Under the pieces are notes generated by a model. That model searched no databases. It saw only the letters and a program-made list of their open reading frames with translations, and had not been told where the DNA came from. Both the position numbers and the translations under genes were made by a program. Shown here piece after piece: positions 2,317-53,337 of a stretch of 64,000 nucleotides of DNA. The stretch comes from Octopus sinensis (lineage: Eukaryota): NCBI RefSeq assembly GCF_006345805.1, contig NW_021833012.1, positions 1 to 64,000 on the forward strand. Reading direction: 5' to 3'. Each line of letters starts with the position of its first letter. Positions within the stretch are counted from its first letter, which is position 1.

Positions 2317-3460
2317 CAATTAAATAAGTACCAGTTGTGCACTGGGGTTGATGTAATTGACTTAGCCACTCTCCTGAAATTGCTGGCCTTGTGCCAAAAT
2401 TTGAAACCAAAATTCCAGTGATGTTTATGGTCAATAAAATAAGTACCAGTTGAGCACTGGGGTTGATGTAATTGACTTAGCCACACTCCTGAAATTGCTG
2501 GCCTTGTGCCAAAATTTGAAAGCAAAATTCCAGTGATGTTTATGGTCAATAAAATAAGTACCAGTTGAGCACTGGGGTTGATGTAATTGACTTAGCCACT
2601 CTCCTGAAATTGCTGGCCTTGTGCCAAAATTTGAAACCAAAATTCCAGTGATGTTTATGGTCAATAAAATAAGTACCAGTTGAGCACTGGGGTTGAGGTA
2701 ATTGACTTAGCCACTCTCCTGAAATTGCTGGCCTTGTGCCACAATTTGAAACCAAAATTCCAGTGATGTTTATGGTCAATAAAATAAGTACCAGCTGAGC
2801 ACTGGGGTTGATGTAATTGACTTAGCCACTCTCCTGAAATTGCTGATCTTGTGCCAAAATTTGAAACCAAAATTCCAGTGATGTTTATGGTCAATAAAAT
2901 AAGTACCAGCTGAGCACTGGGGTTGATGTAATTGACTTAGCCACTCTCCTGAAATTGCTGGCCTTGTGCCAAAATTTGAAACCAAAATTCCAGTGATGTT
3001 TATGGTCAATAAAATAAGTACCATTTGAGCACTGGGGTTGATGTAATTGACTTAGCCACTCTCCCGAAATTGCTGATCTTGTGCCAAAATTTGAAACCAA
3101 AATTCCAGTGATGTTTATGGTCAATAAAATAAGTACCAGTTGAGCACTAGGGTTGAGGTAATTGACTTAGCCACTCTCCTGAAATTGCTGGCCTTGTGCC
3201 AAAATTTGAAACCAAAATTCCAGTGATGTTTATGGTCAATAAAATAAGTACCAGTTGAGCACTGGGGTTGAGGTAATTGACTTAGCCACTCTCCTGAAAT
3301 TGCTGGTCTTGTGCCAAAATTTGAAACCAAAATTCCAGTGATGTTTATGGTCAATAAAATAAGTACCAGTTAAGCACTGGGGTTGATGTAATTGACTTAG
3401 CCACTCTCCTGAAATTGCTGGCCCTGTGCCAAAATTTGATACCAAAATTCCAGTGATGTT
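2317..3460. repeat. 115-bp tandem satellite (~10 copies) built from a SINE 3' half
   Basis: ORF track offsets of exactly 115 bp. The unit aataaaataagtaccagttgagcactggggttgatgtaattgactt matches the core of the SINE at 12045-12090. Confidence 0.92.
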
Positions 3461-3679
3461 TCTTGTATTTATTATAATTAATAGAGATAGTGTTTACTTA
3501 GTATGTGTTAAATGTTGGTTATATTTTTCTGTTTGCTAATGTATTATACTAATAACATATTAGTATGCTCCTTCACCATCCCTACCCCTAGTTTCGACCT
3601 AGGAAGGTAATGATCATACAGTGCAAAATATGAATGGGTAGTGTTATGCAGGTTGAATTGAAGGCTACTGTATTACTTG

Positions 3680-6600: not shown

Positions 6601-7506
6601 GAGATTGGATGAAGATAGGTGTGTGAAAAAGTGCCACACCCTGGCAGTTGAGGGGACCTGTGGAAGAGGTAGACCCAGGAAAACCTGGGTCGAGGTGGTG
6701 AAGCACGACCTTCGAACTCTAGGTCTCACCAAGGAAATGACCAGAGACCGAGACCTATGGAAGTATGCTGTGCGTCAGAAGACCCGGCAAGACCAGTGAG
6801 AACAATAAAAATCAAATCATATATCAGAAAGCAGGGGTTAAGTGACCCATCTGTTCGTGTCCACTGTCAGCCTCGTCTGGCACCCGTGTCGGTGATACGT
6901 AAAAGCACCATTCGCTCGTGGCCGTTTGCCAGCTCTGTCTGGCCCCGTGTCGGTGGCACGTAAAAGCACCATCCGTTCGTGTTCGTTGCCAGCCTCGCCT
7001 GGCCCTGTGCCGGTGACATGTAAAAGCACCGTCCGTTCGTGGCCGTTTGCCAGCTCTGTCTGGCCCCGTGTCGGTGGCACGTAAAAGCACCATCCGTTCG
7101 TGTTCGTTGCCAGCCTCAGCTGGCCCCCGTGCCGGTGACACGTAAAAGCACCGTCCGTTCATGGCCATTTGCCAGCTCTGTCTGGCCCCGTGTCGGTGGC
7201 ATGTAAAAGCACCATCCGTTCGTGTCCGTTGCCAGCATTGCCTGGCCCCGTGCCGGTGACACGTAAAAACACCATCCGTTCGTGGCCGTTCGCCAGCTCT
7301 GTCTGGCACCTGTGCAGGTGGCACGTAAAAAACACCCACTACACTCGCGGAGTGGTTGGCGTTAGGAAGGGCATCCAGCCGTAGAAACACTGCCAAATCT
7401 GACTGGGCCTGATGAAGCCCTCCGGCTTCACAGACCCCAGTTAAACCGTCCAACCCATGCTAGCATGGAAAACGGACGCTAAATGATGATGATGATGATG
7501 ATGATA
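3680..7506 (+). mobile_element. Near full-length RTE-clade LINE (AP endonuclease, RT, 3' UTR, (GAT)n tail)
   Basis: VGTLNVGTL, AGDFNGHVG, SQIDYIL (endonuclease); [38 protein letters not shown] (RT); [17 protein letters not shown]; stop at 6797-6799; GAT tail 7483-7506. Confidence 0.95.
6860..7330 (+). repeat. ~61-bp tandem repeats (alternating A/B variants) in the RTE 3' UTR
   Basis: About 8 copies of gtaaaagcaccatccgttcgtg...gccagc...ggccccgtgtcggtggcac; related arrays at 27880-28460. Confidence 0.85.
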
Positions 7507-12300: not shown

Positions 12301-15152
12301 GGCCTGACACTGGCATTGGCCATGACTACAGTCTCACTTGTTTTGACAGGTCTGTACAAGCACGGTATCTTACCAAAGGTCTCGGTCACCTGTGACTGCT
12401 TCCATGTGACCCAATGCTCAAACGGTGCTTTTTGTGTGCCACTGGCATCAGCCATGACTATGGTTTGACAGGTCCTCACAAGCTCAGCATATCACCCAAC
12501 ATCTGAAGGGTGCTTTATATGGGCCAGTTATGCTACAATGGCATTGGCCATTACTCCAATCTCACTTGGCTTGACAGGTCATCTCAAACATCACATATTG
12601 TCAAAGATCTTCGTCACTGCCTCTGTCAGGTTCAAAGTATGAAGGTCATGCTTCACCACCTCATCCCATTTCTTCCTGGATCTACCTCTTCCACATGTTC
12701 CCTCCACTGTTAGGGTGTGACACTTCTTCATACAACTGTCCTCATCTACATGCATCACATGACCATACCAGTGCAGTCATCCCTCTTGCACACAACATCT
12801 GATGCCTCTTATCCCTAACTTTTCTTTCAAGATGCTTACACTCTGTCAAACATACACACTGACATTGCACATCCAGTGAAGCATACTGGATTCATTTCTT
12901 TCAACCCTACATATGTCCTTGGCTCTCACAGCCCATGTTTCACTGCTATGTAGCGTAGCTGTTCGCACACAGGCATCATACAATCTTACTTTCACCTTTG
13001 GTTGCCAGCAGGGTCAGGAGCTCTCTGAATTTTGCCCTGCCATTTTTATTCTCACTGCTACACTCTCAGAGTATCCACCTCCACTGATGATTTGGTCACA
13101 TAGATAACAGAAGCTATCTACTACCTCTAGCTTAGACCTCTGGCATTTGATGGAGTCTCTTTTCTGTACATTTCTAGTGTTTATCGTACATGTGCCTACT
13201 CCACACACACAAACTTTTTTCCCTGTTAATCTTCCTTTGATATTGCTGCACCTTTTATGTGTCCATAGCTTACACCAGGTACATCTTACGGAGTTGCTAC
13301 CTATGCCTTTTCTTCAGATTGAGCTGGGATATTTGGAGGGATTTGTGATTTGTCTGCCTTACTGCTTTCAGTTTTGCCTGGTTAACTCTAAAGCCCTTCA
13401 ATTCTAGACCTTCTTTCTATACTTAAATATATTAATTTATGATATATATTAACATATATTAGCATGTATTAAACAGAAACTTAAGAAAGCAAATATCTTT
13501 GCAGGTGGGTTTGAAATTCAGGCGGAATCTAACAAAATTATGAATCAAAGAAGGAGTGAACTGAAAACTGGAGAAGTAGTGTCAACTAAAGCTGGTAAAC
13601 TCAAATGCAAGACTATCATTCATGCTGTTGGACCCGTTTGGAATAATGGACGAACCAATGAAATTTTTCACCTTTCAAGAGCTGTTCAAAATTGTTTGGC
13701 ATTCCTTGAAGAAAAGTCTTATACATCAATTGCAATTCCTGCCATCAGTACAGGTAAGAATTTACCATTTTTATTCTGTTCAAATTATTTGGTATAGAAA
13801 TAGTAATTACACTATTTAGTGTATAGCAAGGCAACTATCCTGTCCCTCTATTCTAACCTCTCCCCTGGCACCCATCCACTTCCCTTGGTTTCACTCCCCC
13901 TCTCAACTAAAAGCCTTTGTCTTGCAAGTAACTTGGCCATCCCACAGGTGCTTTTTACGTGACACCAGCTCCTGTGACGGTGTCACATAAAAAGCACCCA
14001 GTGCATTCTCTAAAGTGGTTGGCATTCTGTAAAGGAAGGGCATCCAGCCATAGAACCTATACCAAAAGAGAAAATTGGTGCCTGGGCAGCTCTCTGGCCT
14101 TGAAAACAGATGTGAAATGATGATGATGATGATAATGACTGGTGTCCGTGTCGGTGAATGCCGCTTGACTGGCGTCCGTGTCCGTGACATGTAAAAGCAC
14201 AAACTGATCGTGGCCGTTTGCCAGCCTCCTGTAGCTCCTGTGCTGGTGGCACCTAATAAACACCCACTACACTCACAGAGTGGTTGGCGTTAGGAAGGGC
14301 ATCCAGCTGTAGAAACACTGCCAAACCAGACTGGAGCATGGTGCAGCCTCCATGGCTTACCAGACCCCGGTCGAACCGTCCAACCCATGCCAGTATGGAA
14401 AACGGACGTTAATGATGATGGGGATGATGATGATATATTATTGTAGGAGATGTGGCAGCATGGTTAAAAAGCTGATGTTCCACATGATTTCTGATTCAGT
14501 TCCCTGGCAAGTCTTTTATTATAGACATGGGATGGCCAAAACCTTCTCAGTGGATTTGGTAGCCAGGAATTGAAAAGAGGCCTGTTGTGGCACAACTGAC
14601 ATTCTACAAGTACACTATTTGTTGTTGTTGTGTGAGTGTGTGACAGTCCCGGCACCCAAGCAGACAATTCTTGTCTGCCAACACTAACAATATAAGTGCC
14701 TTTATGCACCATATGAGAGGTTCTCTCACAGTAAATAACAAAGCATTTGGTGCTCAAACACAACATCCACATTTAGTTGGATATAAAAATTGCCTGTTGG
14801 TATTACTATTGCTTCTGTTGCTGTTAATTACCTTTTTCATAGGCTTGCTGGCTATTTGCAAAATCAGTGCCTTAACAGATACTGAAATTCTATATATGGT
14901 CAATAGATTTGGCTGTTATGTCTCCACTAGATGTCTTCTACTGAAGAGTCCAGGCAGGATGAAATCATGTCATCGTAGCAGATGGTTCTCGTCTGTTAAA
15001 AATATAAATATGAGTAATTTTATGCACCCAAGGCCCTGTGGGAGGTCCTCTTGAGGTAAATAATGCAGTTCTCTCTGTTCTAACATGACCTTTATGTTAA
15101 GTTGGATATAAAGATTGCTTTTCATATTAATACTGCTTGAGTCAACAATAAT

Positions 15153-15907: not shown

Positions 15908-18487
15908 ATTTTTATATTTATATATTATTTTATTTCTTAATTAATTAATTAATTAATTTTTTTTATATATCAAAAGTATTAAAAGTTTAATAGAAGATAA
16001 AGAGTAAAACACTACGATCGTTTCATGGCTGTACCAATTCGAATAACAATAATTTAAATTCAATTAATAATTCGAGTTATGGTTACAGTCAATCTTCAGG
16101 TTAATTGAAATATGTTAAAAATAATCAGAAATATTTAAACAATATTTTTAAGATATAAATAATATAATAATTTTACTTATAATAAACTCTATTATCAAAC
16201 TAGAAACTTAAAACTTAACAATTATGATTATATCAAAATCAATTATAATGTTAAATATTAATTTCAATTTATAAGGTAGGAAACACACCAATAATCTAAT
16301 ATCGGTAATAGTCTATATCTAATTACATAAATATTAAAAAAAACAAAAAAACTATTATATACAAATTATCAATGAAAATATATAAATGTATATAAATATT
16401 ATAATTAAGATCTAAAATAATCTCTATAAATAAATATATATGTACATATAATAAAAACCTAATAAATTAATTTTTCATATTTAAAGATGAAATAGCTAAT
16501 TTTAAAAATACAAACAAACAAACTTAAACGAACTTTCAGAAATCTTATGTAAAATACTTATAGAAATAATCAATTCGTAGTTATATAGTATCGAATAAAT
16601 ACTATAAATATAATTATCAATGGGAATAACTAGCGAATATCAATTTTAAAAGACAATAACTAAGTTATGCTATTAAGTTAGACAGGGCCTGGACCAATCT
16701 TTAGTCGAAACATATCTAAGTTTATCAAAGTTTATCTAATTTTAATTATAAAAAATTTAAAACTACAATTAATACTATTAATACATGTATATACAAAAGC
16801 CTAACTTTAGATACCTCCACTTGCAAAGACCTGTTGAAGTAAGTGAAATCATTGTTGTGGCTGATGACAGAACCGCCTAATTGGTACCTGTGCCGGTGGA
16901 ACGTTAAAAGCACCATTCGAGTGTGATCGTTGCCAGTGCTGCCTAACTGCTTCCTGTGCTGCTGGCACGTAAAAAGCACAATTCAAGCATGGTCATTGCC
17001 AGCGTCGCCTGACTGGCTCCTGTGCAGTTGGCATGTAAAAAGCACAACTTGAACATGGTCAATGCCAGTACCGCCTGACTGGCCCTTGTGCCGGTGGCAT
17101 GTTAATGCATGCACTACACTCTCGGAGTGGCTGGTGTTAGAAAGGGCATCCAGCTATAGAAACTTTGCCAGATCAGATTGGAGCTTGGTGCCAGCCAACA
17201 GTCATACCGTCCAACCCATGCCAGCATGGAAAGCAGACATTAAACCTTCATTGCACTGTCCTAACTGGCCCAAACTTCGAAGTCACTGTCAGTAATATTC
17301 CTGCCCAAATGTAATGAATTTGTTCTCTACAAAAGGAGAGAGTAAACTATCCGATTAGTATGAAATTGTTCCTATTATAACTGAACATAGAAGCAAACAT
17401 TAACTACATATAAATATCATCATCATCATTTAATGTTCGTTGTCCATGCTGGCATGGGTTGGATGATTCGACTGGGTTGGCATGCTGGAAGGCTGCACCA
17501 GGCTCCAGTCTGATTTGGCATATTTCTCTACAGCTAGATGCCTTTCCTAATGCCAACCACTCTGAGAGCGTAATAGGTGCTTTTACGTGCCACAGGCACA
17601 GGTGCCATTTGTATGATACTGGTATCTGCCATGACTGCAATTTTGCTAGGCATAATGGGTCTTCATCTCATAATGCCCAAGGTCTTGGTCATTGCCTCCA
17701 TGAGGCCCAAGACTCGGAAGGAGCTTGGCCACTTTGCCTCCATGAGGTCCAGCACTCGAAAGGAACTCAAACATCTCACCTCCGTGAGGCCCAACATTCA
17801 AATGGAACTCAGCTTCTTTGCCTCCATCAGATCCAATGCTTGAAAGGAACTAGTCACTATGCCTCCATGATGCCCAAGGTTTGAAAGGTACTCAGGTATT
17901 TTTGCCACTGAGAGGTCTAATGCTCGAAAGGTACTCAGCCACTTTGCCTCCATGAGGCCCAACATTCAAAAGATGTTCTTTAGGTGCCACCAGCATAGTT
18001 TCACTTGGCTTAATAGGTCCTCTTAAGCAGAACACATCGCCAAAGGTCTCGGTCACTTGTCTGCCTCTGTGAGGTTCAAAGTTCAAAGGTCATGCTTCAC
18101 CACCTCATCCCATTTCTTCCTGGGCCTACTGCTATCACAGGTGCCATCCACAGTTAGAGATCAGCACATCTTTACATAGCTGTCCTCATCCATATGCATC
18201 ACATGACCATACCAGCATAGGTGTCTCTCTTGAACACCACTTCTAACACTTTATACATATGTGTGTGTAATCAAATGATAGTTATAAACAAGGATCACCA
18301 TCTTACAAGCATTTCTGATCTTCAATGAAAACATGTGTGGCCATGGGGCAATATTAGCTTCCTTGGCAAGGGCTGGTGATAGGAATGTCAGCTACACATA
18401 GAAAATTTGCCTCAACCAATTCCACCTGAAGCATGAAAAAAGAGACATTAAAGTTATTATTATTATCATTATTATTATTGTTATTTC

Positions 18488-18521
<34 letters not shown>

Positions 18522-21500
18522 TAACTGTACAAACAACGAAGAAAAGAAACGTGTTCAAGAAGAGAGAGAGACAAACTTAGATCTTATTAAATACTGTCGT
18601 ATATTAATGAGTGTAAAGACCCCCCACCCCCGGTCATGAATGGCCATGATATTGCACCTAGAAAGTTCTCCTCTGTCTATTAAAGAATCTTCTTGTAAAT
18701 GATGGAATTGTGTTGTTTCTTGGTATTGCAGCTGATAAATTACTGAAATTATATCATATGTTAATCTATATGTATAAAACAAAGTATGTCTGTGTTTGTA
18801 ATATGTATGTATTTCTACAGTTTTCAACTGATTTTCACCAAACTTTACACACACATTACTTATGTGCCATGGATGTTTATGCACTATAACATTTTGTCCA
18901 GAGCTCCCACGCAATGTGACAAACTGACCATAAAAAAGTTCTTTACATGGCTTTTTCTCTAAAAACTGCAGTTTTTAACTGATTCTCTCTCTCTATTAAT
19001 CTCTTTTCCTTTTTCCCACTTTCACATATACAAATATTCATTTCTTTCTTTCTCTCTCTCTATTTCTCACTCTCACTCTATTTCTCACGCTCTCTCTAAC
19101 TCACTCTCTCTCTATTTCTCACTCCCTCTCTCTCTATTTCTCACTCACTTTCTCTCTCTTTCTCACTCTCTCTCTCTTTATTTCTCACTCTCTCTTTATT
19201 TCTTACTCTCTCTCTCTATTTTTCACTATATCTCTCTATTTCTCACTCTCTATTTCTCCCTCTCTCTATATTTCTCACTCTCTCACTCTCTATTTCTCCC
19301 TCTGTCTCTCTCTCTCTATTTCTCACTCTCTCCCTCTCTATTTCTCTCTCTATGAAAATTGGCTTCAGTGTGTTTCAGTTTTGTCGTGCGTATATATATA
19401 TATATATATATATCGTTGTCTTCATGCTATCTGAATGTTCTCCCCACAACATTACTTTGCTTATTTTAAGTTTCCTGCACTCTCTCTATTTAAATGCACC
19501 ATTTACATTTCTCCCTCTATCGGAAACCATTGTGTAATATTGTTTCCCTTTCATTCTTTCACTTTTGTGTGTGTGTTTGTGCATTCAATAAGGATGAAAA
19601 TAGTACAGGACATTTCAAACCTTGACAATGATGATGTCACTTATACAAGTGTGTATGTATCTCTGAGTGTATGTGTGTGTGGGTGTACGAGTGTGTGTGT
19701 GTCTCTCTGACTGTGTGTGGGTTTTCACACTAGGTACATTATTAAACACATGCACATCTACACATATGCATACACATGTGATGACTGATATGCGTGAATG
19801 TATGTCTGCATGTGTCTCTCTTATTATATGTATATGTCTGTTTGTGAGAGTGTATGTGTGCGTATCGTCGCATGTGTATGTGTCTGTGAGTGCGTGTGTG
19901 TTTGCGTGCCCACTACCTACATCAGTGCTTTTCAAACTTTTTGCTGGAGCAGAACCCCAAGGAAACATTCCACTGGCTCGAGGAACCCCTGTGCAATAAT
20001 TTAATAGTCTTATGCACACATATCTGCACAAGAGACTTAAAAATTACTGCCAATTTTAGCAGTTTTGTAACTTTTTGCGGAACCCCTGGACTGTACTGGT
20101 GGAACCCTAAGGATCCGTGGAACCCTGGCTGAAAACCACTGACCTACATTATTAAACAAGCTATCATCTACACAACCTCTTGACAAAAAACAATTACGTG
20201 GAAGGTCCAAATTATATGAAAATACATATCTACCGTTCCATTAACAGTTCATAATTATTGCAGCAGTTACAAGGGTGCAGGGTATTTGCAAATTGCTTAT
20301 ATTTGGTTAATTTATACAGTATACAAAAATATAGACATACTACATGCTTTCAAAAATAGAGATTAATGTATATTTTTTCTATGTTTATAATTTTTTGTTT
20401 AGAATATTGAAAAAAATTATGCCACCAAAGGAAAAACATAATCTTTCCAGAAACATCTATAAAGCAAGGAGTGCAGAAAACTGAAGGCGAGAGTCTCAAG
20501 AGATAATGGACATAAGACTTTGTCAACATCAGTAAAAGCATACTGTTGTTGTTAAGCAACAAGATGGGTAAAGGTGATTAGGTGATGGTCACGGGCTTAG
20601 GGGCGGGAGACCCCAGACCTTGGGAAAAAAAAAAAAAACTTTGGTCGTCTTGTAGTTGAGGGCTCTTCGTTGACACCCGACATCACTGGGAGGTGGCCCT
20701 CGAAGTCGCTGGAAATGGAGATCTCCAGGTCCAAATTCTTGAACGGCGTAGAAGCATGCTGCAGCATGTCAGATGTAGTCTCAATACAGAAGGGGCATGA
20801 CACTTTCCAAAGAACACCAAACGCATGCTGCAACGCATCAAATGGAGTCTGAAGACAGAAGATGAGACTTTCTGAACATCAGCAATGGCATGCTGCAGTA
20901 CATCAGATGGAGTCTCAAGAGGGAAGAAGGGACATGACACTTTCCAAAGATCACCAAACACATGCTGCAACACATCATATAGGACCTCAAGAGAGAAGGG
21001 AGATGAGACTTTCTGAAGATCAACAAAGGCATTCTGCTGGACATCAGATGGAGTCTCAAGACAGAAAGGAGATGAGACTTTCTGAAGATCAGCAAAGGCA
21101 TTCTGCTGGACATCAGATGGAGTCTCAAGACAGAAAGGAGATGAGACTTTCTGAAGATCAGCAAAGGCATTCTGCTGGACATCAGATGGAGTCTCAAGAC
21201 AGAAAGGAGATGAGACTTTCTGAAGATCAGCAAAGGCATTCTGCTGGACATCAGATGGAGTCTCAAGACAGAAAGGAGATGAGACTTTCTGAAGATCAGC
21301 AAAGGCATTCTGCTGGACATCAGATGGAGTCTCAAGACAGAAGGAGATGAGACTTTCTGAAGATCAGCAAAGGCATTCTGCTGGACATCAGATGGAGTCT
21401 CAAGACAGAAAGGAGATGAGACTTTCTGAAGATCAGCAAAGGCATTCTGCTGGACATCAGATGGAGTCTCAAGACAGAAAGGAGATGAGACTTTCTGAAG

Positions 21501-24500
21501 ATCAGCAAAGGCATTCTGCTGGACATCAGATGGAGTCTCAAGACAGAAAGGAGATGAGACTTTCTGAAGATCAGCAAAGGCATTCTGCTGGACATCAGAT
21601 GGAGTCTCAAGACAGAAAGGAGATGAGACTTTCTGAAGATCAGCAAAGGCATTCTGCTGGACATCAGATGGAGTCTCAAGACAGAAAGGAGATGAGACTT
21701 TCTGAAGATCAGCAAAGGCATTCTGCTGGACATCAGATGGAGTCTCAAGACAGAAAGGAGATGAGACTTTCTGAAGATCAGCAAAGGCATTCTGCTGGAC
21801 ATCAGATGGAGTCTCAAGACAGAAAGGAGATGAGACTTTCTGAAGATCAACAAAGGCATTCTGCTGGACATCAGATAGAGTCTCAAGACAGAAAGGAGAT
21901 GAGACTTTCTGAAGATCAGCAAAGGCATTCTGCTGGACATCAGATGGAGTCTCAAGACAGAAGGAGATGAGACTTTCTGAAGATCAGCAAAGGCATTCTG
22001 CTGGACATCAGATGGAGTCTCAAGACAGAAAGGAGATGAGACTTTCCCAAGATCAACAAAGGCATTCTGCTGGACATCAGATGGAGTCTCAAGACAGAAA
22101 GGAGATGAGACTTTCTGAAGATCAGCAAAGGCATTCTGCTGGACATCAGATGGAGTCTCAAGACAGAAAGGAGATGAGACTTTCTGAAGATCAGCAAAGG
22201 CATTCTGCTGGACATCAGATGGAGTCTCAAGACAGAAAGGAGATGAGACTTTCTGAAGATCAGCAAAGGCATTCTGCTGGACATCAGATGGAGTCTCAAG
22301 ACAGAAAGGAGATGAGACTTTCTGAAGATCAGCAAAGGCATTCTGCTGGACATCAGATGGAGTCTCAAGACAGAAAGGAGATGAGACTTTCTGAAGATCA
22401 GCAAAGGCATTCTGCTGGACATCAGATGGAGTCTCAAGACAGAAAGGAGATGAGACTTTCTGAAGATCAGCAAAGGCATTCTGCTGGACATCAGATGGAG
22501 TCTCAAGACAGAAAGGAGATGAGACTTTCTGAAGATCAGCAAAGGCATTCTGCTGGACATCAGATGGAGTCTCAAGACAGAAAGGAGATGAGACTTTCTG
22601 AAGATCAGCAAAGGCATTCTGCTGGACATCAGATGGAGTCTCAAGACAGAAACGAGATGAGACTTTCTGAAGATCAGCAAAGGCATTCTGCTGGACATCA
22701 GATGGAGTCTCAAGACAGAAAGGAGATGAGACTTTCTGAAGATCAGCAAAGGCATTCTGCTGGACATCAGATGGAGTCTCAAGACAGAAAGGAGATGAGA
22801 CTTTCTGAAGATCAGCAAAGGCATTCTGCTGGACATCAGATGGAGTCTCAAGACAGAAAGGAGATGAGACTTTCTGAAGATCAGCAAAGGCATTCTGCTG
22901 GACATCAGATGGAGTCTCAAGACAGAAAGGAGATGAGACTTTCTGAAGATCAGCAAAGGCATTCTGCTGGACATCAGATGGAGTCTCAAGACAGAAAGGA
23001 GATGAGACTTTCTGAAGATCAGCAAAGGCATTCTGCTGGACATCAGATGGAGTCTCAAGACAGAAAGGAGATGAGACTTTCTGAAGATCAGCAAAGGCAT
23101 TCTGCTGGACATCAGATGGAGTCTCAAGACAGAAAGGAGATGAGACTTTCTGAAGATCAGCAAAGGCATTCTGCTGGACATCAGATGGAGTCTCAAGACA
23201 GAAAGGAGATGAGACTTTCTGAAGATCAGCAAAGGCATTCTGCTGGACATCAGATGGAGTCTCAAGACAGAAAGGAGATGAGACTTTCTGAAGATCAGCA
23301 AAGGCATTCTGCTGGACATCAGATGGAGTCTCAAGACAGAAAGGAGATGAAACTTTCTGAAGATCAGCGAAGGCATTCTGCTGGACATCAGATGGAGTCT
23401 CAAGACAGAAAGGAGATGAGACTTTCTGAAGATCAGCGAAGGCATTCTGCTGGACATCAGATGGAGTCTCAAGACAGAAGGAGATGAGACTTTCCCAAGA
23501 TCAACAAAGGCATTCTGCTGGACATCAGATGGAGTCTCAAGACAGAAAGGAGATGAGACTTTCCCAAGATCAACAAAGGCATTCTGCTGGACATCAGATG
23601 GAGTCTCAAGACAGAAAGGAGATGAGACTTTCTGAAGATCAGCAAAGGCATTCTGCTGGACATCAGATGGAGTCTCAAGACAGAAAGGAGATGAGACTTT
23701 CTGAAGATCAGCAAAGGCATTCTGCTGGACATCAGATGGAGTCTCAAGACAGAAAGGAGATGAGACTTTCTGAAGATCAGCAAAGGCATGCAGCTGCAGC
23801 ACTTAATGCTGAATCATTAAAACGTTTAGCTCACCAGATTACACAGAGGTTCAATAGAATAGCTCTCAGAATCAGGTCACATACAAATTCGTTCTTCACA
23901 ACACCTGGAGCTTCTTTCAGATATGATCCATCGCATTCTTATAAAAATGATAATTCTGTTCAAATCGGTGACCTTTCTTGTCATCTGTGCATATATTCTT
24001 GTCATTTGTGCAAAGCTTTTACATTAACTCCACAAATGTTTTGTCATCAATGCAGCACTTTCATGTATCACCTGTTTCATATATATACAAACTATGCCCT
24101 TTTAATCCCGAGCAACACCGGGTATCTCTGCTAGTTATATATATTTTGAGTAAGAACATTTGTTGGATTAAATGTGTTGTATATTTTATTTATTACAGGT
24201 ATTTATGGTATACCCATAGAAGAAGGAACCAAATGTACAGTAAAGACGATAAAGAATTATCTTGATACTCACACAAATTCTAAAATAAAACATATTTGTT
24301 TAATTGATGTACGGAAGGAAGTAATCAGAGCTTTTAAGCTTCATCTAGAAATGGTGTTTGGAATCAGTAAAAGCAGAGGTAGGACTTGTTATTTGTTTGA
24401 TATTTTAGTGAAAACTTAAATGATTTATTTCAGGTGTTAATTAAGATTTTTCCTCCTTCAGTCAACTTTTATCTGATTCCTATTATTGGTTTATGGGCAC

Positions 24501-27500
24501 AGCCATGGATTTGTGGTTAAAAAGATTCATTTCTAACCATGTTAATTCCCAATGTAAGGCAACTCAAGAAAATATCTTCTAATATGGCCCTGAGCTGACC
24601 AAAGTCTTGTCAACTGGTTTAGAAGTTAGAAACTGATACAAGGGCTCCTCATATATGTACTGTGTGTGTTTGTACTCTTGTCTTGACATCATGTGATGGC
24701 TGTAAACGAGCATCCCCAGCATACAGGTGAGGTTGTTTGTTTCCTGTCTTCTGTGGAAACCATGTCTGGCCAGGGGGAAATATTACCTTGCTTGGAAACA
24801 GGTGAGGGTCAGCATCAGGAAGAGCATCCAGCTATAGAAAGTCTGCCTCAATAAACTAATCTGACCCATGCAAGCAGGGAACAATGGATGTGAAAACAAG
24901 GATGATGATGTTTAATTTATTGCGGTTGATAAAATACTCTTGTCTCACTCTGTGAATCCTGTCTTGTATAACTAACGAAGGATAATTATAATTATTTATC
25001 TGATACATTGTAAACATGAGTATTGCTTGTAATTACTATGAAGTTATAGATTCCCCCCCCCCACCTCAAAAGAAAAGGGCTTTTTCAATAAGTGAATGAC
25101 TTCTCAGTTTCTCTGACTAAAAATTAAAATTTAGTGCAATTTTTTTAATGACTTCTTTCTTTTTTGATTTGTTGTTATCATCTGCAGCAGTGGTGGGGGT
25201 GGGGGTCTTTTAGCAGGGATGCAGTCAGCAAAGTGAAGGTGGGCAATGAGTATAGCGATTAATCTAAGGTACAGGTAGAGGTTCACTAAGGATTGGTCCT
25301 CAGTCCCCTTTTGTTTATCATAGTCCACTAGACAATAACAGGGCAATTTAAGATATGCTGCCCCTAGGAGCTCCTCTATGCTAATGAACTTGTTCTCATA
25401 GTTGAATCACTTCCAGAACTAAAAAAGAAATTTCAGGTGTGGAAGCAAGGTTTAGAATCAAAGGGCCTTAGAGTTAACCTGGCAAAGACCAAAGTTTTAG
25501 TAAGTAGGAAGGCAGACAAATTACAAACCCCTTTGGGTAGATGGCCCTGCTTGTTCTGTTGAAAATGCATTGGCAGAAGCTCCATGTGATGTATCTAGTG
25601 CAAGCGATGGATACATAAGAGGTACAGCAATATCAGAGGAAGGTTAACTGGGAAAATAGTTTTGTGTTTGGAAGGGGCACAGGTACAATAAATACTAAAA
25701 ATGTACAGAAAATAGATTCCATTAATTGCTAGTGGGGTAAGCTAGATAGCTTCTGTTATGTAGGTGACCAAGTCAGTAGCAAATTGGATGCTCTGAGAGT
25801 GTAGCTGTGAGAATAAGATTAGGTTAGGTGAAAGTTCAGAAAGCTCCTAACTCTGCTGGCAACAAAAGGCCTCTCCTTCAGAGTGAAAGGCAGATTGTAG
25901 GATGCCTGTGGGAAAACAGCCATGTTCCATGACAGGGAAATGTGGGCTGTGATCACAGAGGACATGTGAAAGATATGAAGCTAGAAGATAGAAATAATTA
26001 CAGAGGTAACAAATTGTTGGTTCAGGTGATGAAGGTTACAGAGAGAGTCATAACCCAACTAATTAGGGAGAAACTTAGTCTAGATGAGATGCAGTTTGGG
26101 TTTGTGCCAGGGAGAAGCACCACTGGTGCTATGTTTCTGGTAAGGTAACTGTAGGAGAAATGCCAAGCCAAATCTTGTCTTTTGTTGACTTTTGACAGCG
26201 TCCGCTCATCCCATATCTGGTGGTCACTGTGGAAACTAGGGATAGACGAGTGGTTGGTGAGATCTGTACAACCCTTGTACAGGAACGCTACCAGTAAGGT
26301 GAAGGTGGGCAACAGGTATAGTGAAGAATTTGGAGTACAAGTAGGGATTCAGCAAGGAATGGGTGCTCAACCCCCTTTTGTTCATCATAGTTCTCCAGGC
26401 AATAACAGAGGAATTCAAGACAAGCTGCCCTGGGAGCTCCTATACCCTGATGACCTTGTTCTTATAGCTGAATCACTACCTGAGCTAGAGAAGAAGTTCA
26501 AGGTATGGAAACAAGATCTAGAATCAAAAGGCCTTAGAGTTAACCTAGCAAAAACCAAAGTCATTGTAAGTAGGAAGGCAGACAGATCACAAATCCTCTC
26601 AGGCAGATGGCCCTGCTCAGTCTGTAGAAAAGGTGTAGGTAGAAACTCCATAAGCTGCACCCATTGTAATCTTTGGACACAAAGGAAGGTTAACAGAGAA
26701 ATTAACTTTTGGTATGTGGAAGGTGCACAGGTACAATAAACACTGAAAATGCACAGAAAATAGACTCTATCAACTGCAGGTTAGAGGTAGTAGATAGATT
26801 CGGTTACCTAGGTGACCAAGTTAGTAGTGGAGGTGGATGTTCTGAGAGTATAGCTGTGAGAATAAGATTAGGCTGGGCAAAGTTCAGAGAGCCCCTGCTT
26901 CTGTTGGTAACAAAGGACTTCTCCCTCAGAGTGAAAGCCAGATTGTATGAAGCCTGTGAGTGAACAGCTATGCTACATGGCAGTGAAACATGGGCTATGA
27001 CAGCCAAGGACATGTGTAGGCTTGAGAAAAATGAAGCCAGTATGCTTCACTGGATGTGCAATGTCAGTATGCATGTTCGACAGAGTGTAAGCATCTTGAG
27101 AGAAAAGTTAGGCATAAGAGGAATCAGATGAGGTGTGCTGGTATGGTCATGTGATGCATATGGACAGGTGTGTAAAGAGGTGCCAATCTCTAACTGTGGA
27201 GGGAACTTATGATAGAAGTAGACCCAGGAAGACATGGGACAAGGTGGTGAAGCACGATCTTCAAACTTTGAGCCTCACAGAGGCAATGATTGGTGACCGA
27301 GACCTTTAGTGATGTGCTGTGCTTGAGAGGACCCCTTCAAGCTATGTGCACCCATGCCAGTGGAACATAAAGAACGTCTTTTGAACTTTGGGCCTCACAG
27401 AGGCAAATTAGCTGAGTTCCTTTCAAACATTGAGCTTCACAGAAACAAAGTGGCTGAGTTCCTTTCAAGTGTTGGGCCCACAGAGGCAATGACTGAGACC

Positions 27501-29042
27501 TTTGGCATTATGTTGTGTTTGAGAATATGACCCATCATGCCGAGCAAAATTGCAGTCGTGGAAGATACTGGTGTTGCACAAAATGACACCCATGCCGGTG
27601 GCATGTAGAAGCACCCATTACACTCTCAGTGTGATTGACATTTGGAAAGACATCAGCTGTAAGAACCATGCCAAATCTGACTGGAACCTGGTACAGCTTT
27701 CCAGCCTATCAGCTTCAGTCAAACCATCCAACCCATGTCAGCATGGAAAGTGGATGTTAAATGACGATGATTATGATGATGATTTACATTTTAAACAAAT
27801 CAAAATAGATGAACATCAATGGAATTTGTATCTTTGTGGTACCAGTGCTGGTGGCACACAAGAAAACCATCCGAACGTGGCTGTAGCCAGTACCGTATCG
27901 ACTGGCCTCTGTGCTGTGGGCACGTAAAAAACACCATCCGATTGTGGCCGTTCGCCAGCCTCATCTGGCACCTGTGTCAGTGGCACATAAAAACACCATC
28001 CGAAGACCCGGCAAGACTAGTCAGGCCATAACCCGTGGCCCCTACCTGGGACGTAGTCAGTCTAGCTGTGCATACCTTCCTTCTTGTGACACTTGTGAAG
28101 ACCTGTTGAGGCAAGTGAAAATCAAATCAAAAAATCAAAACAAATCAAAATAGATGAACATCAATGGAATTTGTATCTTTGTGGTACTAGTGCCGGTGGC
28201 ACACAAGAAAACCATCCGAACGTGGCCGTAGCCAGTACCGCATCGACTGGCCTCCATGCTGTGGGCACGTAACAAACACCATCCGATCGTGGCCGTTCAC
28301 CAGCCTAATCTGGCACCTGTGTCGGTGGCACATAAAAACACCACCCGAGCGTGGCCGTTCGCCAGCCTCGTCTGGCACCTGTGTCGGTGGCACATAAAAA
28401 CACCACCCGAGCGTGGCCGTTCGCCAGCCTCATCTGGCACCTGTGTCGGTGGCACATAAAATCACCCACTACACTCTCGGAGTGGTTGGCGTTAGGAAGG
28501 GCATCCAGCTGTAGAAACACTGCCAGATCTGACTGGCCTGGTGCAGCCTTCGGGCTCCCCAGACCCCAGTTGAACCGTCCAACTCATGCTAGCATGGAAA
28601 GCGGACGTTAAATGATGATGATGATGATTCTTTAAGAGAGAAATTTCTTGAAATAAGTGTTTTATCTTCTTACGTCCAATAATGTTGAACCAAGAGTTAT
28701 AGCGTTGTCTGACTCTGAAGTATTTACGAGAGGCCATTTAGCTCTGGAAGCCTTCTTCAACTGAATAACCAAGTTTCTTTCCTTGAACAGCTTAACCTGT
28801 TAGAAATTACTTATCACATGACCATCAGCCTGAGTCATGTGATGTGGTAAGCAGGTAAATTGTGTGAAGCAGACAACACTGCCATATGAGTGAGATATAC
28901 ATCATCATCGTTTAACGTCCGTTTTCCGTGCTAGCACGGGTTGGACAGTTCGACCGGGGTCTGGGAAGCCAGGGGCTGCACCAGGCTCCAGTCTGATCTG
29001 GTGAAAGAAAAATTACAAGAAAGGTTTTAAAATGTACCATAT

Positions 29043-29073
<31 letters not shown>

Positions 29074-32000
29074 CATATATATATGTATATATATGTGTGT
29101 GTATATATATATATATATCCTTGATTAAAGTTTAAAGATTATATGTTTATTTTGGACTTCTGGTCACACATATGCAATAATATACAGCAACTGGTCTGAG
29201 TATTACCTGTACCATACCCATACATGTATGTCCCAACAGATTTCTTTCCCTATAGTTTCAAGAAAAACATAATTTTTTAATGAAATTTTCTATAAATAAG
29301 CTTCAGATGGTATAAATTCCAATTCTATTGGAACATGTTGTAAAAAACAACAAAAAAACCCCACTCAAAAACAAATATCTGATGTGTATCAATATTTATG
29401 TATGCTATCCCAGCAATTTATATTTTTGCATCAAATTCCATTATTATCCTAATATACACACCTTGAAAGATATTTGTGGAAATTTTCCTTTAAAAATAGC
29501 CATTTTCCCAAAAGTTATGAGGAAACGAATTTGAGTTTATGTGAATTTTCTGAAAAACCTCTCTCCACTCCCTCAAAAACATTTTTTCACACCAAATTCC
29601 CAACTTAGTGGAATCTACACCATCTGAAGCCTGTTTTAATAAATGTTTTAAGCAAAAACGTTTCATAAGAGGTGGAAGATCACATTTTACTAACCAGTTT
29701 CACTGTTTTCAGACTTTGAAAGTTTCAAGTATGTTCTTCAATGTATTTTTAGTCCATTTGGTAGAAGAAATAGATGGAAATAACGTTATATAGCCTTGTT
29801 GCTATATAAAAGGTGTGTGTGTGTGGGGGGGGGGGGGGAGAATGACTACAAGTTAGCATGTATTCTCTTGCTAAATCATATTTTCAGAAAGGAATACCAT
29901 TACTATTTATATGGAATAAAGTAGTTCTTTTAAGAGAGAGAGAAGAATGTTCAATTGTTTATTTTCAGGAACCACATCATTCAACGCATCCCTTCTTGGT
30001 CCACAACAGAAAGCAGCCCCTATGACACCCAGAACTAATGTGGCATCCGGAGAAAATGCTGGCATCAAAATACAACTAATGATTGGTTCAATTTCTAATG
30101 CATCTGTGAGTAAATAGATTCACTTAACATATTTATATTTAATTGTTATTTCATTTGCAAATGAGGAATCATTTCCAGTTAATTAAAACATTTTCTCAAT
30201 CAAACTCAAACATTTTATTTCCTTCACATCTGATATCTTGAGTATATCTTTTGCTAACTTTAACAACCGCAGACTTACTACAGCCATTCTGTAGAGCCTT
30301 ACTTAACAACAATATCAACTGCAACAATGTATCTCTCTTCTCCACGGAATGTTCCTTAGCTGTTTACCATTAATTACTTTTGTAGGTTGATGTCATCGTT
30401 AACAGCACCAATAAAAACCTCCTGCTTAATAATGGTTCTATCTCCAATTTATTCTCAATGCTGCTGGTCCCCAGATACAAAGCGAATGTAGCCAGAAATA
30501 TCCTCAAGGTATTTCTACTTCTGAAGTAGCCATAACTAAAGGATATAACCTCAAATGTAAGAATGTTTTTCATCTGGCATTACCGCCCTGGGGTGTAAAC
30601 TCCTCACATTCAGTAAGTATTATTCATATGTATTTGATTTATTGAAACAGTTAATGTTTGAAGAGAACCTTATGCATGTTGTGTGAGAATCATAAAGCAA
30701 ATGTCAGCATCCTGTTTAATATTTGTTCTTCCAAGTTATCATTGGAAGGAAGCAGAAGATATCGATGAACAGGACACTTTTATATATAAATAGAAGGAAA
30801 AAAGCCTCATGGCCTAACAACAGTTATGTGACTGATAAATAAGACTATATTCAAACATATTTCTGTGTTTTACTGTCTGTATTGGTGAGTTTTTCTCTGT
30901 CATGGCACGAGCACTAGAGAGGTAGTCATGTCCTCAACAACACCAAAGACTCCTCTTGGGTCTGCATTGTCTCTCTTCATTCACCTATCATTTTACACGG
31001 TGGATTGGGTCTGTTTTATTGTAGCAGCATCATGAGTGAGGTTGCCTTGTCCCTTGCAGGACTAAAGAGTGATAGGAATGACAGTTGTGTTTAGCAGTGG
31101 CAGGAGTGAGAGGAGTTGTGAGAGGAGGATATATTTATTACAACTTAATGGTTTCTTCCTGTAATAAGAAAATAATTTAATAAAATGTTCATTATCAATT
31201 ACTAAACAATTATTTTTTTTAGACTCTGGCAAACTTGACTCAAATAATAACCATTTGTCTGGGGAAAGCTGAGAGAAGAGGAGCAAAAAGCCTTGCATTT
31301 CCTATATTAGGGGCTGGAAAATTGAGGTACCCCATTGAAAACCTACCCAGAACTATGTATGAAGCAGTGAAAAACTACTCAAAGCAAAATTCAAGCCAGA
31401 TCAAAGTTGTAAACTTTGTGGTTTATCCTCAAGACACAGAAATAGTAAAGGTTGGTTGATGTATTTGTTGTTTGTTGTTTTATGTTGATATTCTTGGAAT
31501 TCACCAAAACAAAGAAAATATTCTGCAATAAACAAAGGAAATCGAAATGAAAATAAAACTTAGAATCATGCTCGTTATTTATCACCTGTTTTCCATGCTG
31601 GCATGGGTTGGACAGTTTGACAGGAACTGGCTAGGCAAAGAGCCAAACCTGGTTCCATTCTTTGTTTTGGTATGGATTCTGCAGTTGAGATACCCTTCCT
31701 AACATCAACCAATTTACAGAGTGTACTGGGTGCTTTTTACGTGGCACCAGCACCGACAGAATTACCAATTATCTTGCAAGACAAGAACCCCTCAACTGGA
31801 CGGGAGTGGGGGGAATGGTACTGGTCGGCTGTGGCTTTGCGCCAGTTGAAAGACTTAGGGTATACTGGGGACAGAGAGAGGTATCTTGCTGTAGAGTAGT
31901 TACATGAATGCCCCAGTTGGAAGGAAAAGGAAAGAAGGGGTCAGATAGTAAGATAAAAAGAGTGATAGTGAGAGATATGATGGTGGAGATGTGATGGGAC

Positions 32001-36300: not shown

Positions 36301-39300
36301 CTTCGTCCCAGAGCTCGCAAGATCGCGCCTCTATAGTAGGAGAAGGCGGAAACGTGGTCCTTTGCTATTTGTAAGACCCGCAGAAGAGAAAGCAGGTCAA
36401 CCCCCAATACCGAGAGCTTCAACGGATGGATGAATGCGCATCCAGGCTCAGTGGTTGCGTAGCAAGTCGGGGACAAGAAACAGGAAGAAAGAATGAGAGA
36501 AAGTTGGGGGTGAAAGAGTACAACAGGGGTCGCCACCACCCCCTGCCGGAGCCTCGTGGAACTTTAGGTGTTTTCACTCAATAAACACACACAACGCCCG
36601 GCCTAGGAATCAAAACCGCGATCCTCCGACCACGAGTCCACTACCCTAACCACTGGGCCATTGCACCTCCACTTGCTGCTGCTGCAGCATTGACATAATT
36701 GGTGTATATTCAAGGAAGAAGAATTGAGTAAAATAATGTAAACCAATATTGAAATAGAAGAAACATCTGAGACATGAAAATGCATATTAGTTTTTGAACA
36801 GCGTCTTTCACAGAAGGACATTTCCATCTTGTGATGTCTTTACAGAGGGACTTTAGTTCATGAAACTGGTGAAGAATATAATAAAACTAGCACTATGACC
36901 CGGCGTTGCCGGGTTATAATGCTAGTGCATGCGTGCGCGCATACACACGAGTACTGTCCAAATCTCTGACCAATCACATACAGCTAGCTGGCATTCAATT
37001 TGCGTATCAAGTTTCGGGCATTTTGATTGGGTTTTGGATAGAAAATTCACAAAAAAGTCACTTCTATTGATGTTTTAATGGCTTTGCGGGGTGACTGGGG
37101 AAATGTAAAGATGTGCACGACCACCCTTGGATGGTTTTGAATGACCATAGAAAGTGCGAGCCCTCTAACTGAAAAATTATGAATTTGTATAAAGGACACA
37201 CACACAGACAGACATTTTGCCGTTTATATATAGAGAGATGACTGAGAGAGAAATAATCATTCAACTAGTTTTCTGAAATGATTGAATGAAGGAAACCAAG
37301 GTAGACTGTGAGTTGTCTAGGTTGATTGTGTATAGGGACGAGCTAGAGGTATAAACAGTGACAGACAAACAGAGAGAGAAGGGGAGAGAGAGAGAAATCT
37401 TTTTGGAAGAAGGAATGTAAATCTTTATTCTTTCTATTTCTCTCTCTCTCTCTCTCTCTTTATCTTTCTCTATATAACACACACATACATGTACACACAG
37501 ATGCATTCTTATGTACGTATTATCATGATGATGATGATGATGGTGATGATTATGATGATCTCAGAAACAGATTTAAGAAAACACAACAAAAGTAGTAAAA
37601 CAGATCTGTAGTATCATCATCTTCACCCTCCCCCTCACCACCACAACCACCACCACCACCGCTGCCACCATAATAATAATTATCATGATCATCATAACAT
37701 CCACTTTTCTGTGCTTGAATGGGTTGGATGGAATTTGTTGAGGTGGATTTTCTATGGCTTGGTGCCTCTCCTGTCACCAACCCTCACCACCTTCCAAGGG
37801 AAGTAACTGTTTCCCCATTTTACAGAATATCACAAAATATTAGAAACAAAGGACACCACTTGCATAACAGGGACACTCGCTTACAACTATCACACAATGT
37901 CAAGGCAAGGAGAAATGCACTCACACACACACACACGTATGACAGGCTTCTTTCAGTTTCTGCTTACCAGACCTATTCACTAGGCTTTGTTTGGCCTAAG
38001 GCTGTAGCTGAAGAGACTTGTCCAAGGTGCCATTCATTGAGACTGAACCTTAATTAAGTCAATTAAAAACAATAGCAACAAATGCAGTATTAATATAAAA
38101 AGGTAAATTTTACATCCAACTAAATGTGGATGTTATGTTAGAACACCAAATACTGTGTTACTTACCTTGAGAAGAACTCTCATATTGACGCATGCTGCAT
38201 AAAAGCACTCATATTTATACTGCTAGCAGATGACAATCATCTATCTACTGGCACCAAAACTACCACATCACCTATTTTCGCTCTGCCTGGATCCATCAGT
38301 GACAGACATCCAAAAGCAACATAATAGCCGAATCTCACTGTCAGTCATATGTACACTTTTATGTCTTTTTGGACATTCATGTTGCAAATAGCCAGAAAGC
38401 TCATTAAAGGTAATTAATAGCCGGAAGGCTTATTAGAAATAATGAATAGCCACAAGGTTTATTAAACATAATTAATAGTTAGAAGGTTTATTATAGATAA
38501 TTAATAGTTAGAAGGTTTATTAGAAAAAATTAATAACCAGGAGGTTTATTAAAGATAATTATTAACCAGAAGGTTTATTAAAGATAATTATTAACCAGAA
38601 GGTTTATTAAAGATAATTATTAACCAGAAGGTTTATTAAAGGTAATTAAGAGCCACAAAGCTGATTTTTATTTTGATGTTGATGTACTTGACTCAGTAGG
38701 TCTCCTCAAGCACAGCATATCACCTTACGATCCAAGGTACTTTTAAGTGGGCTGGTTATGCGAAACTGGTGTGGGTTACAGCTGTGAACTCACTTTAATT
38801 GCCGGGTCTTCTCAGTCACAGCATATCTCCAGAGGTCTCGGTCTTTCGCCATTGCCTCTGTGAGGCCCAATGTTCAAAGGTCATGCTTCACCACCTCATC
38901 CCATGGCTTCCTGGGTCTCCCTCTACCCAAGATTTCTTCCACTGTTTGAGAGTGGCACTCCTTCACACAGCTCTCCTCATCCATCCGTAGTACATGACCT
39001 TACCAATGCAAACGTCTTTCTTGCTTGCCACATCCAATGCTTCTTATGCCCAACATTTCTCTCGGGGTGCTTACACTCTGTCGTGTGTGCACACTGACAT
39101 TACACATCCAGCAGATCATGCTAGCTTCATTTCTTTCAAGCCTACACATGTCCTCTGCAGTCACGGCCTATGTTTTACTGCCGTGAAGCATGGCAGTTTG
39201 CTCACATGCATCCTACAATCTATCTTTTACTCTGAGCAAGAGGCCCTTTCTCACCTATAGGAGTAGAAGCTTTCTGAACTTTGCCCAGGCAATTCTTATT

Positions 39301-53296: not shown

Positions 53297-53337
<41 letters not shown>

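Follow-up and report, generated by a model that had tools for sequence, protein, structure and literature searches.

A transposase coding repeat in forty near-identical copies within a probable Helitron relic in an Octopus sinensis macro-domain gene

How did a 69-bp repeat that reads as protein come to stand forty times over within an intron, and does the very long open reading frame (ORF) that results amount to a gene? These questions are raised by the first 64,000 nucleotides of contig NW_021833012.1 of Octopus sinensis (the whole stretch that was analysed, hereafter the window), in which a 5,370-bp transposable element carries a tandem array homologous to the N-terminal repeats of Helitron transposases. 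The explanation that we favor, and hold to be quite probable, is that the element is an internally deleted relic of an HLE1 Helitron, whose own coding repeat was expanded by unequal exchange or slippage into an array that is now neutral. The evidence starts with the array itself, which is made up of two blocks.

20714–21047, plus strand: old diverged units, about five, of 58–72 bp, in which a TAG stop occurs at 20776 and the unit at 20842 has lost 4 bp.
21048–23804, plus strand: core array of forty near-identical 69-bp units, each corresponding to 23 residues (unit table).

Tandem Repeats Finder reported a period-69 array at positions 20769–23796 (43.9 copies, 96% matches, 0% indels, score 5558), and together with the unit table this confirmed the claim, made in a preliminary description of this DNA, that a 23-residue repeat is present in 40 near-identical copies. 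Within the core block 29 of the 40 units are the exact consensus, and the mean pairwise identity is 98.7%. The remaining 11 carry variants in a non-random order; for example, units 15, 36 and 37 share TCC-CAA/CAA, and units 34–35 have CGA. Exactly three units, starting at 21324, 21944 and 23461, are 68 bp long, and each of these lacks the same A in AGAAAGG. The flanking units, including one further diverged unit upstream (20485–20548), are far more diverged than those of the core, which fits a recent expansion within a sequence that was already old. The edge of the array shows the ancestral state, a series of about six to eight diverged units, from which one unit type was then copied some 40 times. 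It had also been proposed that a coding repeat has become a satellite; the amplification of a coding repeat stands, while "minisatellite" is the safer term for an array seen at a single locus.

The identity of the repeat was revealed by a phmmer search in which the 216-residue ORF at the 3' end of the array was compared with 1.84 billion (1.84e9) protein representatives, with hits counted at E ≤ 1e-3. A total of 40 hits were obtained (the best at 2e-23, 2e-16 [P0002] and 5e-10, with P0005 at 2.9e-9), in which both the repeats and the tail that follows them were covered. These hits are the N-termini of Helitron Rep/helicase transposases, and their features occur in a constant order: a basic start of the MPPKK type; 23-residue units of the form E-[ST]-x-E-x-R-x-x-R-L-x-x-D-x-x-R-H; and a tail motif, F-x-Y-D-P-...-I-G-x-[LM]-...-C-x-x-C-x-A-x-K-[FW]-x-G-E-x-P-G-M-C-C-x-x-G-K. 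The octopus tail, beginning FRYDPSHSY, aligns with the homologues up to about position 24045 (alignment A3) and forms a feature of its own.

23797–24045, plus strand: linker and Cys-rich N-terminal transposase motif, recognized from alignment A3, a family profile and the open frame.

The suggestion that the peptide following the repeats is Helitron-related was borne out by the phmmer hits, as well as by a pairwise comparison with P0001 (39% identity over 162 residues, pairwise E 2e-31). A profile of alignment A3, with the octopus sequence included, also matched residues 14–181 of the Helraiser transposase (7LCC; E 8.7e-6). Among the related sequences, one protein of 1655 residues (P0004) contains STPRs, Helitron_like_N and PIF1, another (P0026) combines STPRs and Helitron_like_N within one ORF, and in L003/L004 an ORF with STPRs lies 61 bp upstream of an ORF with Helitron_like_N. 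A hidden Markov model (HMM) built from the units of the homologues only scored the octopus unit at 13.8 bits and matched neither of the two open minus-strand frames. Judged by these comparisons, the plus frame is the ancestral coding frame and the repeat is a Helitron N-terminal repeat. A search of a word-indexed protein database with two units plus the tail gave no hits; a profile search of the same type of database returned mainly rotifer sequences and no cephalopod relatives; and Rfam matched nothing in the window.

Whether the repeat is an STPR, as had been suggested by the term "STPR-like", has a less direct answer. The residues that define an STPR are a conserved Glu1, Thr/Ser2 and Arg9 (PMC4856987), and the octopus unit, with a period of exactly 23 residues (69 bp, 0% indels), has Glu1, Ser2 and Arg9, plus Leu10. 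Direct tests did not support the assignment: four window peptides and a synthetic 4-unit consensus gave no hit at E ≤ 10 to Pfam STPRs or Helitron_like_N, so the profile check that the preliminary description had put forward came out negative when taken literally. The Pfam scans of window peptides returned only noise, e.g., YpeD-like and DUF1299, a search of the repeat against the PDB found no match, and pairwise comparison with the STPR domain of FMBP-1 gave nothing (E 23). Unlike the octopus unit, which falls below the Pfam STPRs model, the homologues P0002 (36 bits), P0005 (30.4) and P0020 (27.7) pass its gathering score of 27 bits, and the A3 profile matches the FMBP-1 STPR structure 5D23 (E 4.9e-6). 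Membership in the STPR family is thus transitive, holding only through these intermediates.

Relatives of the element carry far fewer units. Two short public contigs, taken from Logan assemblies of runs SRR11869394 (L001) and SRR11869391 (L006), match the window collinearly both before and after the array. In L001, positions 562–762 correspond to 20330–20532 of the window and positions 724–1003 to 23673–23965, with about two units between them, and L006 contains about 6.7 units at positions 611–1070, too diverged for Tandem Repeats Finder. The protein homologues have between 1 and 11 units (1–10 across all 40 by HMM count), the upper end being made up of P0026, P0019 and P0029 with 10–11 similar units. 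No protein among the 1.84e9 representatives is more than 59% like the homogenised unit, and a scan of metagenome contigs for exact matches to the 69-bp unit found 0, in a collection that is a poor proxy for an Octopus genome. Since the relatives carry few and diverged units, the 40-copy block is an expansion peculiar to this copy or its lineage. The largest DNA array inspected in relatives belongs to the P0026 gene (10.7 copies, 85% match). This array, at positions 9941–10680 of L005 (GCA_015476425.1, JABAIE010000169.1), lies in an apparently intact Helitron ORF of 842 residues with STPRs and Helitron_like_N, which indicates that the number of STPR units is labile in coding Helitron genes too.

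The array lies within an element whose two ends can be recognized, and a second, shorter element in the window (element B) served for comparison. In what follows a slash marks the insertion junction.

18765–24134, plus strand: whole element, a probable internally deleted, non-autonomous relic of a canonical (HLE1-type) Helitron, 5,370 bp, lying in sense in an intron and delimited by its termini.
18765–18800, plus strand: 5' terminus, TCTATATGTATAAAACAAAGTATGTCTGT, with a 29-nt pattern that recurs in the window only at the 5' end of element B.
24108–24134, plus strand: 3' terminus, CCGAGCAACACCGGGTATCTCTGCTAG, with an apparently decayed hairpin (pattern search, DNA fold).
36887–37238, minus strand: element B, a 352-bp non-autonomous Helitron with A/TC...CTAG/T ends (motif and fold comparison).
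19040–19351, plus strand: CT-rich low-complexity tract in the 5' part of the element (Tandem Repeats Finder, periods 8–48).

The 5' end opens with TC (TCTATATG at 18765), as in canonical Helitrons, and the junctions read A/TC at 18764/18765 and CTAG/T at 24134/24135. In the window the 5' pattern TCTATATRTATAAA-N4-AAARTGTCTGT was found only at 18765 and, on the minus strand, at 37236, and the 3' pattern GCAACRCCGGGT-N6-GCTAG only at 24112–24134 on the plus strand and 36887–36909 on the minus strand; for each, 0 occurrences are expected by chance. The Helitron ends A/TC and CTAG/T that had been reported earlier were upheld by both of these patterns. The 3' end also obeys the CTRR rule (TGCTAG at 24129–24134). 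Canonical HLE1 Helitrons are defined by a 5' TC, a hairpin followed by a CTRR end and insertion between A and T (PMC11417382), a definition with which the ends are consistent. The 3' hairpin that had been described did not hold up as a structure: CCCG-N8-CGGG has a stem of 4 bp (−3.2 kcal/mol) that is no more stable than the folds of shuffled sequence (z −0.5). The corresponding hairpin of element B is strong (−14 kcal/mol, z −6.7), and because the 4-bp stem is homologous to it in sequence, we read the former as a decayed hairpin. The likeness of the 3' end to that of the element at 36887 did stand, though limited to about 68% identity across the last 31 aligned columns. Apart from the short terminal motifs that they have in common, no long match between the array element and element B was found by blastn within the window; the two are related but not members of the same family. 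The insertion is flanked by GTTAA/ and /TTATAT, and a target-site duplication is absent.

Inspection by eye also showed an insert of about 220 bp, resembling a miniature inverted-repeat transposable element, nested in the Helitron at 19924–20143. It has imperfect terminal inverted repeats, CAGTGCTTTTCAAAC and CAGTGGTTTTCAGCC, and ACCTACAT is present on both sides, as in an 8-bp hAT-type target duplication; the inverted-repeat arms of this insert were not reported by the repeat tool.

Four consecutive plus-strand ORFs, at 20862–21350, 21347–21970, 21967–23487 and 23484–24134, cover the array and its tail (162+207+506+216 = 1091 codons), and the last of these, 216 codons long, stops inside the terminal CTAG at 24134. 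The three missing A's postulated in the preliminary description correspond to the three 68-bp units, and restoring them does give a frame open from 20862 to 24134, of 1091 codons compared with the earlier estimate of about 1090. The length of an ORF is not by itself evidence of coding here, since three of the six frames of the 69-bp unit are open; the open frame of a unit is copied along with the unit, and a long open frame is thereby inherited automatically. A minus-strand ORF of 616 codons exists as well, and was rejected as a real frame because only the plus frame continues into the homologous tail, the minus frames also failing the Helitron unit HMM. Upstream of the array and within the Cys-rich motif, the sequence is further disrupted.

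20419–20548, plus strand: ancestral transposase start and first diverged unit, with a TGA stop at 20482 and a TAA stop at 20533.
20549–20713, plus strand: probable insertion of about 165 bp with an A14 run, interrupting the repeat region and without counterpart in L001 or L006.
23976–24017, plus strand: in-frame 21-bp tandem duplication inside the Cys motif, adding 7 residues that no homologue in alignment A3 has.

The start region is collinear with positions 562–762 of L001 and 412–653 of L006, and the homologous proteins begin MPPKKSNLSKRTKK or MPPKKRKP. At the place of the TGA stop at 20482, L001 reads CGA, which points to a CpG-to-TpG change. The homology to both contigs breaks off at 20532 and picks up again in the units, and at the other side the homology of the tail to its relatives ends at about 24045, about 90 bp before the 3' end of the element. 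Pfam scans of window peptides found no Rep or helicase domain in the element. Given the substitution stops in the start region, the insertion, the frameshifts and the absence of Rep and helicase, the transposase gene is probably dead. The idea that the locus could encode a very long repeat protein was left unsupported in view of the stops at 20482, 20533 and 20776, the insertion and the three frameshifts in the array.

The element lies between two exons of what is, by domain content, a macro-domain gene.

13498–13753, plus strand: upstream macro-domain exon, with its donor at 13754; the same exon split is found in Argonauta hians.
24199–24378, plus strand: downstream macro-domain exon, with the acceptor AG at 24197–24198, 64 nt after the Helitron.

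The peptide spliced from these two exons matches Pfam Macro (E 9e-26), and its best database match is a protein of Argonauta hians (65% identity), with which the exon split AISTG/I[FY]G (the slash here marking the exon boundary) is shared. Of the 10,445 bp of the host intron, 5,370 bp are taken up by the Helitron, which lies in sense orientation. The distance of 64 bp between the element and an exon acceptor had been noted correctly; the exon itself, described at the time as a PARP exon, is better called a macro-domain exon, in a gene of PARP14 type, and a PARP catalytic exon was not seen within the 64-kb window. Further macro-domain exons were observed at 30386–31456 and 52198–54033, giving at least three macro domains in one plus-strand gene, spread over more than 40 kb and separated by large introns full of repeats. 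The orthologous intron of Argonauta hians contains neither Helitron nor array. It aligns with the 3' flank in the window up to the junction and no further, and does not present a clear empty site.

Our preferred reading of the locus would run as follows. A canonical (HLE1) Helitron would have inserted in sense into an intron of a gene with multiple macro domains (PARP14-type). An internal deletion would have removed Rep and helicase and joined the first ~170 transposase codons to the last ~90 bp of the element, the retained codons comprising the start, the basic N-terminus, the 23-residue STPR-type repeats and the Cys-rich motif. The STPR-type region would already have been a short tandem array of about six to eight diverged 69-bp units, and unequal exchange or replication slippage between neighbours would have turned one of these into 40 near-identical copies, i.e., a minisatellite of 2.8 kb. 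Both the clustering of the variant units and the spread of one deletion to three units fit such a process. We place the expansion at its present site and after the death of the gene, a timing that we infer; the element is probably immobile, and the array would be neutral transposon-derived tandem DNA without function.

Several observations weigh against this reading. The 5' boundary depends on a short similarity between the 5' ends of the array element and element B (a 37-nt local alignment, 76%, E 0.014) and on the A/TC rule, and may be placed wrongly. The tail can be read through for 111 codons without a stop, while its other two frames contain 5 and 8 of them, and no more than 2.5% of background windows of equal length lack a stop. 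Lastly, the three frameshifts, being the same deletion in a short A run, could be assembly errors, in which case the ORF at 20862–24134 would possibly still be open. We take the open tail frame as a sign that the sequence was coding until fairly recently, which leaves a small probability for translation.

The alternative that survives best, though we consider it unlikely, is that the array is older than the insertion, and that it belongs to a family of non-autonomous Helitrons that spread a 69-bp array in the manner of Cg_HINE or DINE-TR1, so that the locus would be the seed of a dispersed satellite. Non-autonomous Helitrons and Helentrons do commonly carry central arrays, which are dispersed along with them (PMC7492417; PMC12628747), and the 10–11 units of the apparently intact genes of P0026, P0019 and P0029 show that unit number may change in Helitrons with a gene. 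The window, however, contains one such array, element B is without it, L001 and L006 carry 2–7 diverged units, the nearest protein is only 59% like the homogenised unit, and the metagenome scan, for what such a proxy is worth, was empty.

A decidedly unlikely alternative is that 18765–24134 is a composite, its 5' terminus stemming from another Helitron fragment and the piece with the array beginning nearer to 20230. It is at about 20230 that homology to L001 and L006 starts, and the 1.6 kb before it (18800–20230) consists of low-complexity sequence and nested repeats without a match; the brevity of the 5' likeness to element B would also suit a composite. Against this, both ends resemble both ends of element B, in the right orientation and with A/TC and CTAG/T, and Helitron 5' regions are in general more variable than 3' regions (PMC11417382).

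We regard it as very improbable that the copy number, perhaps along with the three 1-bp deletions, is an artefact of assembly, the real array being much shorter or longer. Long near-identical arrays are prone to error in assemblies, but 11 of the 40 units have specific variants in a non-random order, unlike the outcome of a simple artificial expansion, and an array of 3 kb is easily spanned by single long reads.

There remains the reading in which array and tail are translated, or were until recently, into an STPR-type protein of up to ~1,090 residues, made for the transposon or domesticated as a protein that binds DNA. In this view the three frameshifts would be sequencing errors, or translation would restart beyond them at the ATGs that every unit contains. 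Points that speak for it are the opening of 20862–24134 once the three A's are restored, the length of the open tail compared with the 2.5% background, the identity of all three deletions as one change in an A run, and the known binding of STPR helices in the DNA major groove, where each repeat spans 4 bp (PMC4856987). On the other side, copying an open unit is enough to yield an open frame, and three of six unit frames are open; the substitution stops in the ancestral start and first units cannot be homopolymer errors; the Cys motif is broken by the 21-bp duplication and truncated; no record of the 216-residue ORF as a called gene was found, nor was there a gene model or similar protein in the databases searched; and the unit, with 5 acidic residues against 4 Lys/Arg, differs from the basic STPRs that bind DNA. 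We give this reading hardly any credence, and the same holds for an expansion that took place inside a working Helitron transposase, or for a frame at 20862–24134 that is still translated, with the deletions as assembly errors. If the frame were indeed translated, a protein with about 44 STPR helices, in principle able to follow the major groove for ~170 bp, would be by far the longest STPR protein known.

Other repeats occur in the window. A 115-bp tandem array with 10 copies (96% match) is present at 2317–3461. Tandem arrays with periods of 61–66 bp (higher-order 121 and 243 bp) were observed at 6847–7330, 16873–17082 and 28264–28466; these share GGCAC(G/A)TAAAA(A)GCACC and look like tandemised repeats resembling short interspersed nuclear elements, scattered through the window. 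Two further arrays, at 38387–38655 and 44146–44630, have a common 29-bp unit, CCAGAAGGTTTATTAAAGATAATTAATAG, and one of them adjoins a minus-strand retroelement bearing reverse transcriptase (about 38700–41800). The remains of long interspersed nuclear elements at 4157–6053, 25368–27300 and 38700–41800 (minus strand) are all broken by stops, with a Pfam RVT_1 match (E 9e-25) at 5481–6053 and a weak endonuclease/reverse transcriptase match at 4157–5263.

With regard to significance, the old units at the edge of the array, together with relatives that have 2–7 units, make the locus a clear and datable case in which protein-coding sequence gave rise to a minisatellite. Helitrons possess in their 69-bp STPR region a tandem repeat from the outset, which suggests that this region may generate arrays recurrently. 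A practical warning also follows, namely that the very long ORFs in such arrays are not to be annotated as genes.

The locus can be compared with several known systems. The STPRs of Bombyx FMBP-1 and human ZNF821 (PF21107, 5D23) share with the octopus unit the 23-residue period and Glu1, Ser2, Arg9 and Leu10. In FMBP-1, which has four repeats of the basic, DNA-binding kind, DNA is contacted by Tyr16 and Arg20 (BmSTPR), whereas the octopus locus has Arg and Gly at these positions and comprises 40 homogenised units that are not net basic (4 Lys/Arg, 5 Asp/Glu). A further comparison is with the HLE1 transposases. The HELIANO survey found Pfam STPRs almost exclusively in HLE1 Helitrons (PMC11417382), and the N-termini of HLE1 Rep/helicase proteins have the same order as the octopus sequence: an MPPK-basic start, E-[ST]...R-L...D-x-x-R-H units and F-x-Y-D-P...I-G-x-[LM]...C-x-x-C-x-A. 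These transposases contain 1–11 units followed by Rep and helicase; the octopus element, in contrast, has 40 homogenised units, neither domain and a broken frame.

It is also established that arrays borne by Helitrons and Helentrons seed satellite DNA (PMC7492417; PMC12628747). The oyster Cg_HINE (PMC7492417) and the Drosophila DINE-TR1 (cited in PMC12628747) resemble the octopus element in that an array lies between conserved Helitron-type ends. As described there, their arrays are non-coding modules, have many dispersed copies and belong mostly to HLE2 elements, whereas the octopus unit is part of a transposase reading frame, the ends are of HLE1 type and one array-bearing copy is known. Plant arrays of truncated Helitrons, attributed to aberrant rolling-circle replication (Xiong et al., 2016, as cited in PMC12628747), are likewise Helitron-derived tandem DNA; according to that account, their unit is the whole truncated element with its 5' ends repeated, as opposed to a 69-bp internal coding repeat in the octopus element, whose 5' and 3' ends each occur once. 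In a full-text literature search, Helitron and STPR occurred together only in the HELIANO paper and its preprint, and no array derived from a transposase's own coding repeat was found reported. The STPR repeats with which Helitron transposases often start and the arrays borne by Helitrons have both been published; the coding origin of such an array appears to be new. The octopus locus joins these two published facts, the unit of its array being taken, in codon phase, from the transposase's own repeat of DNA-binding type.

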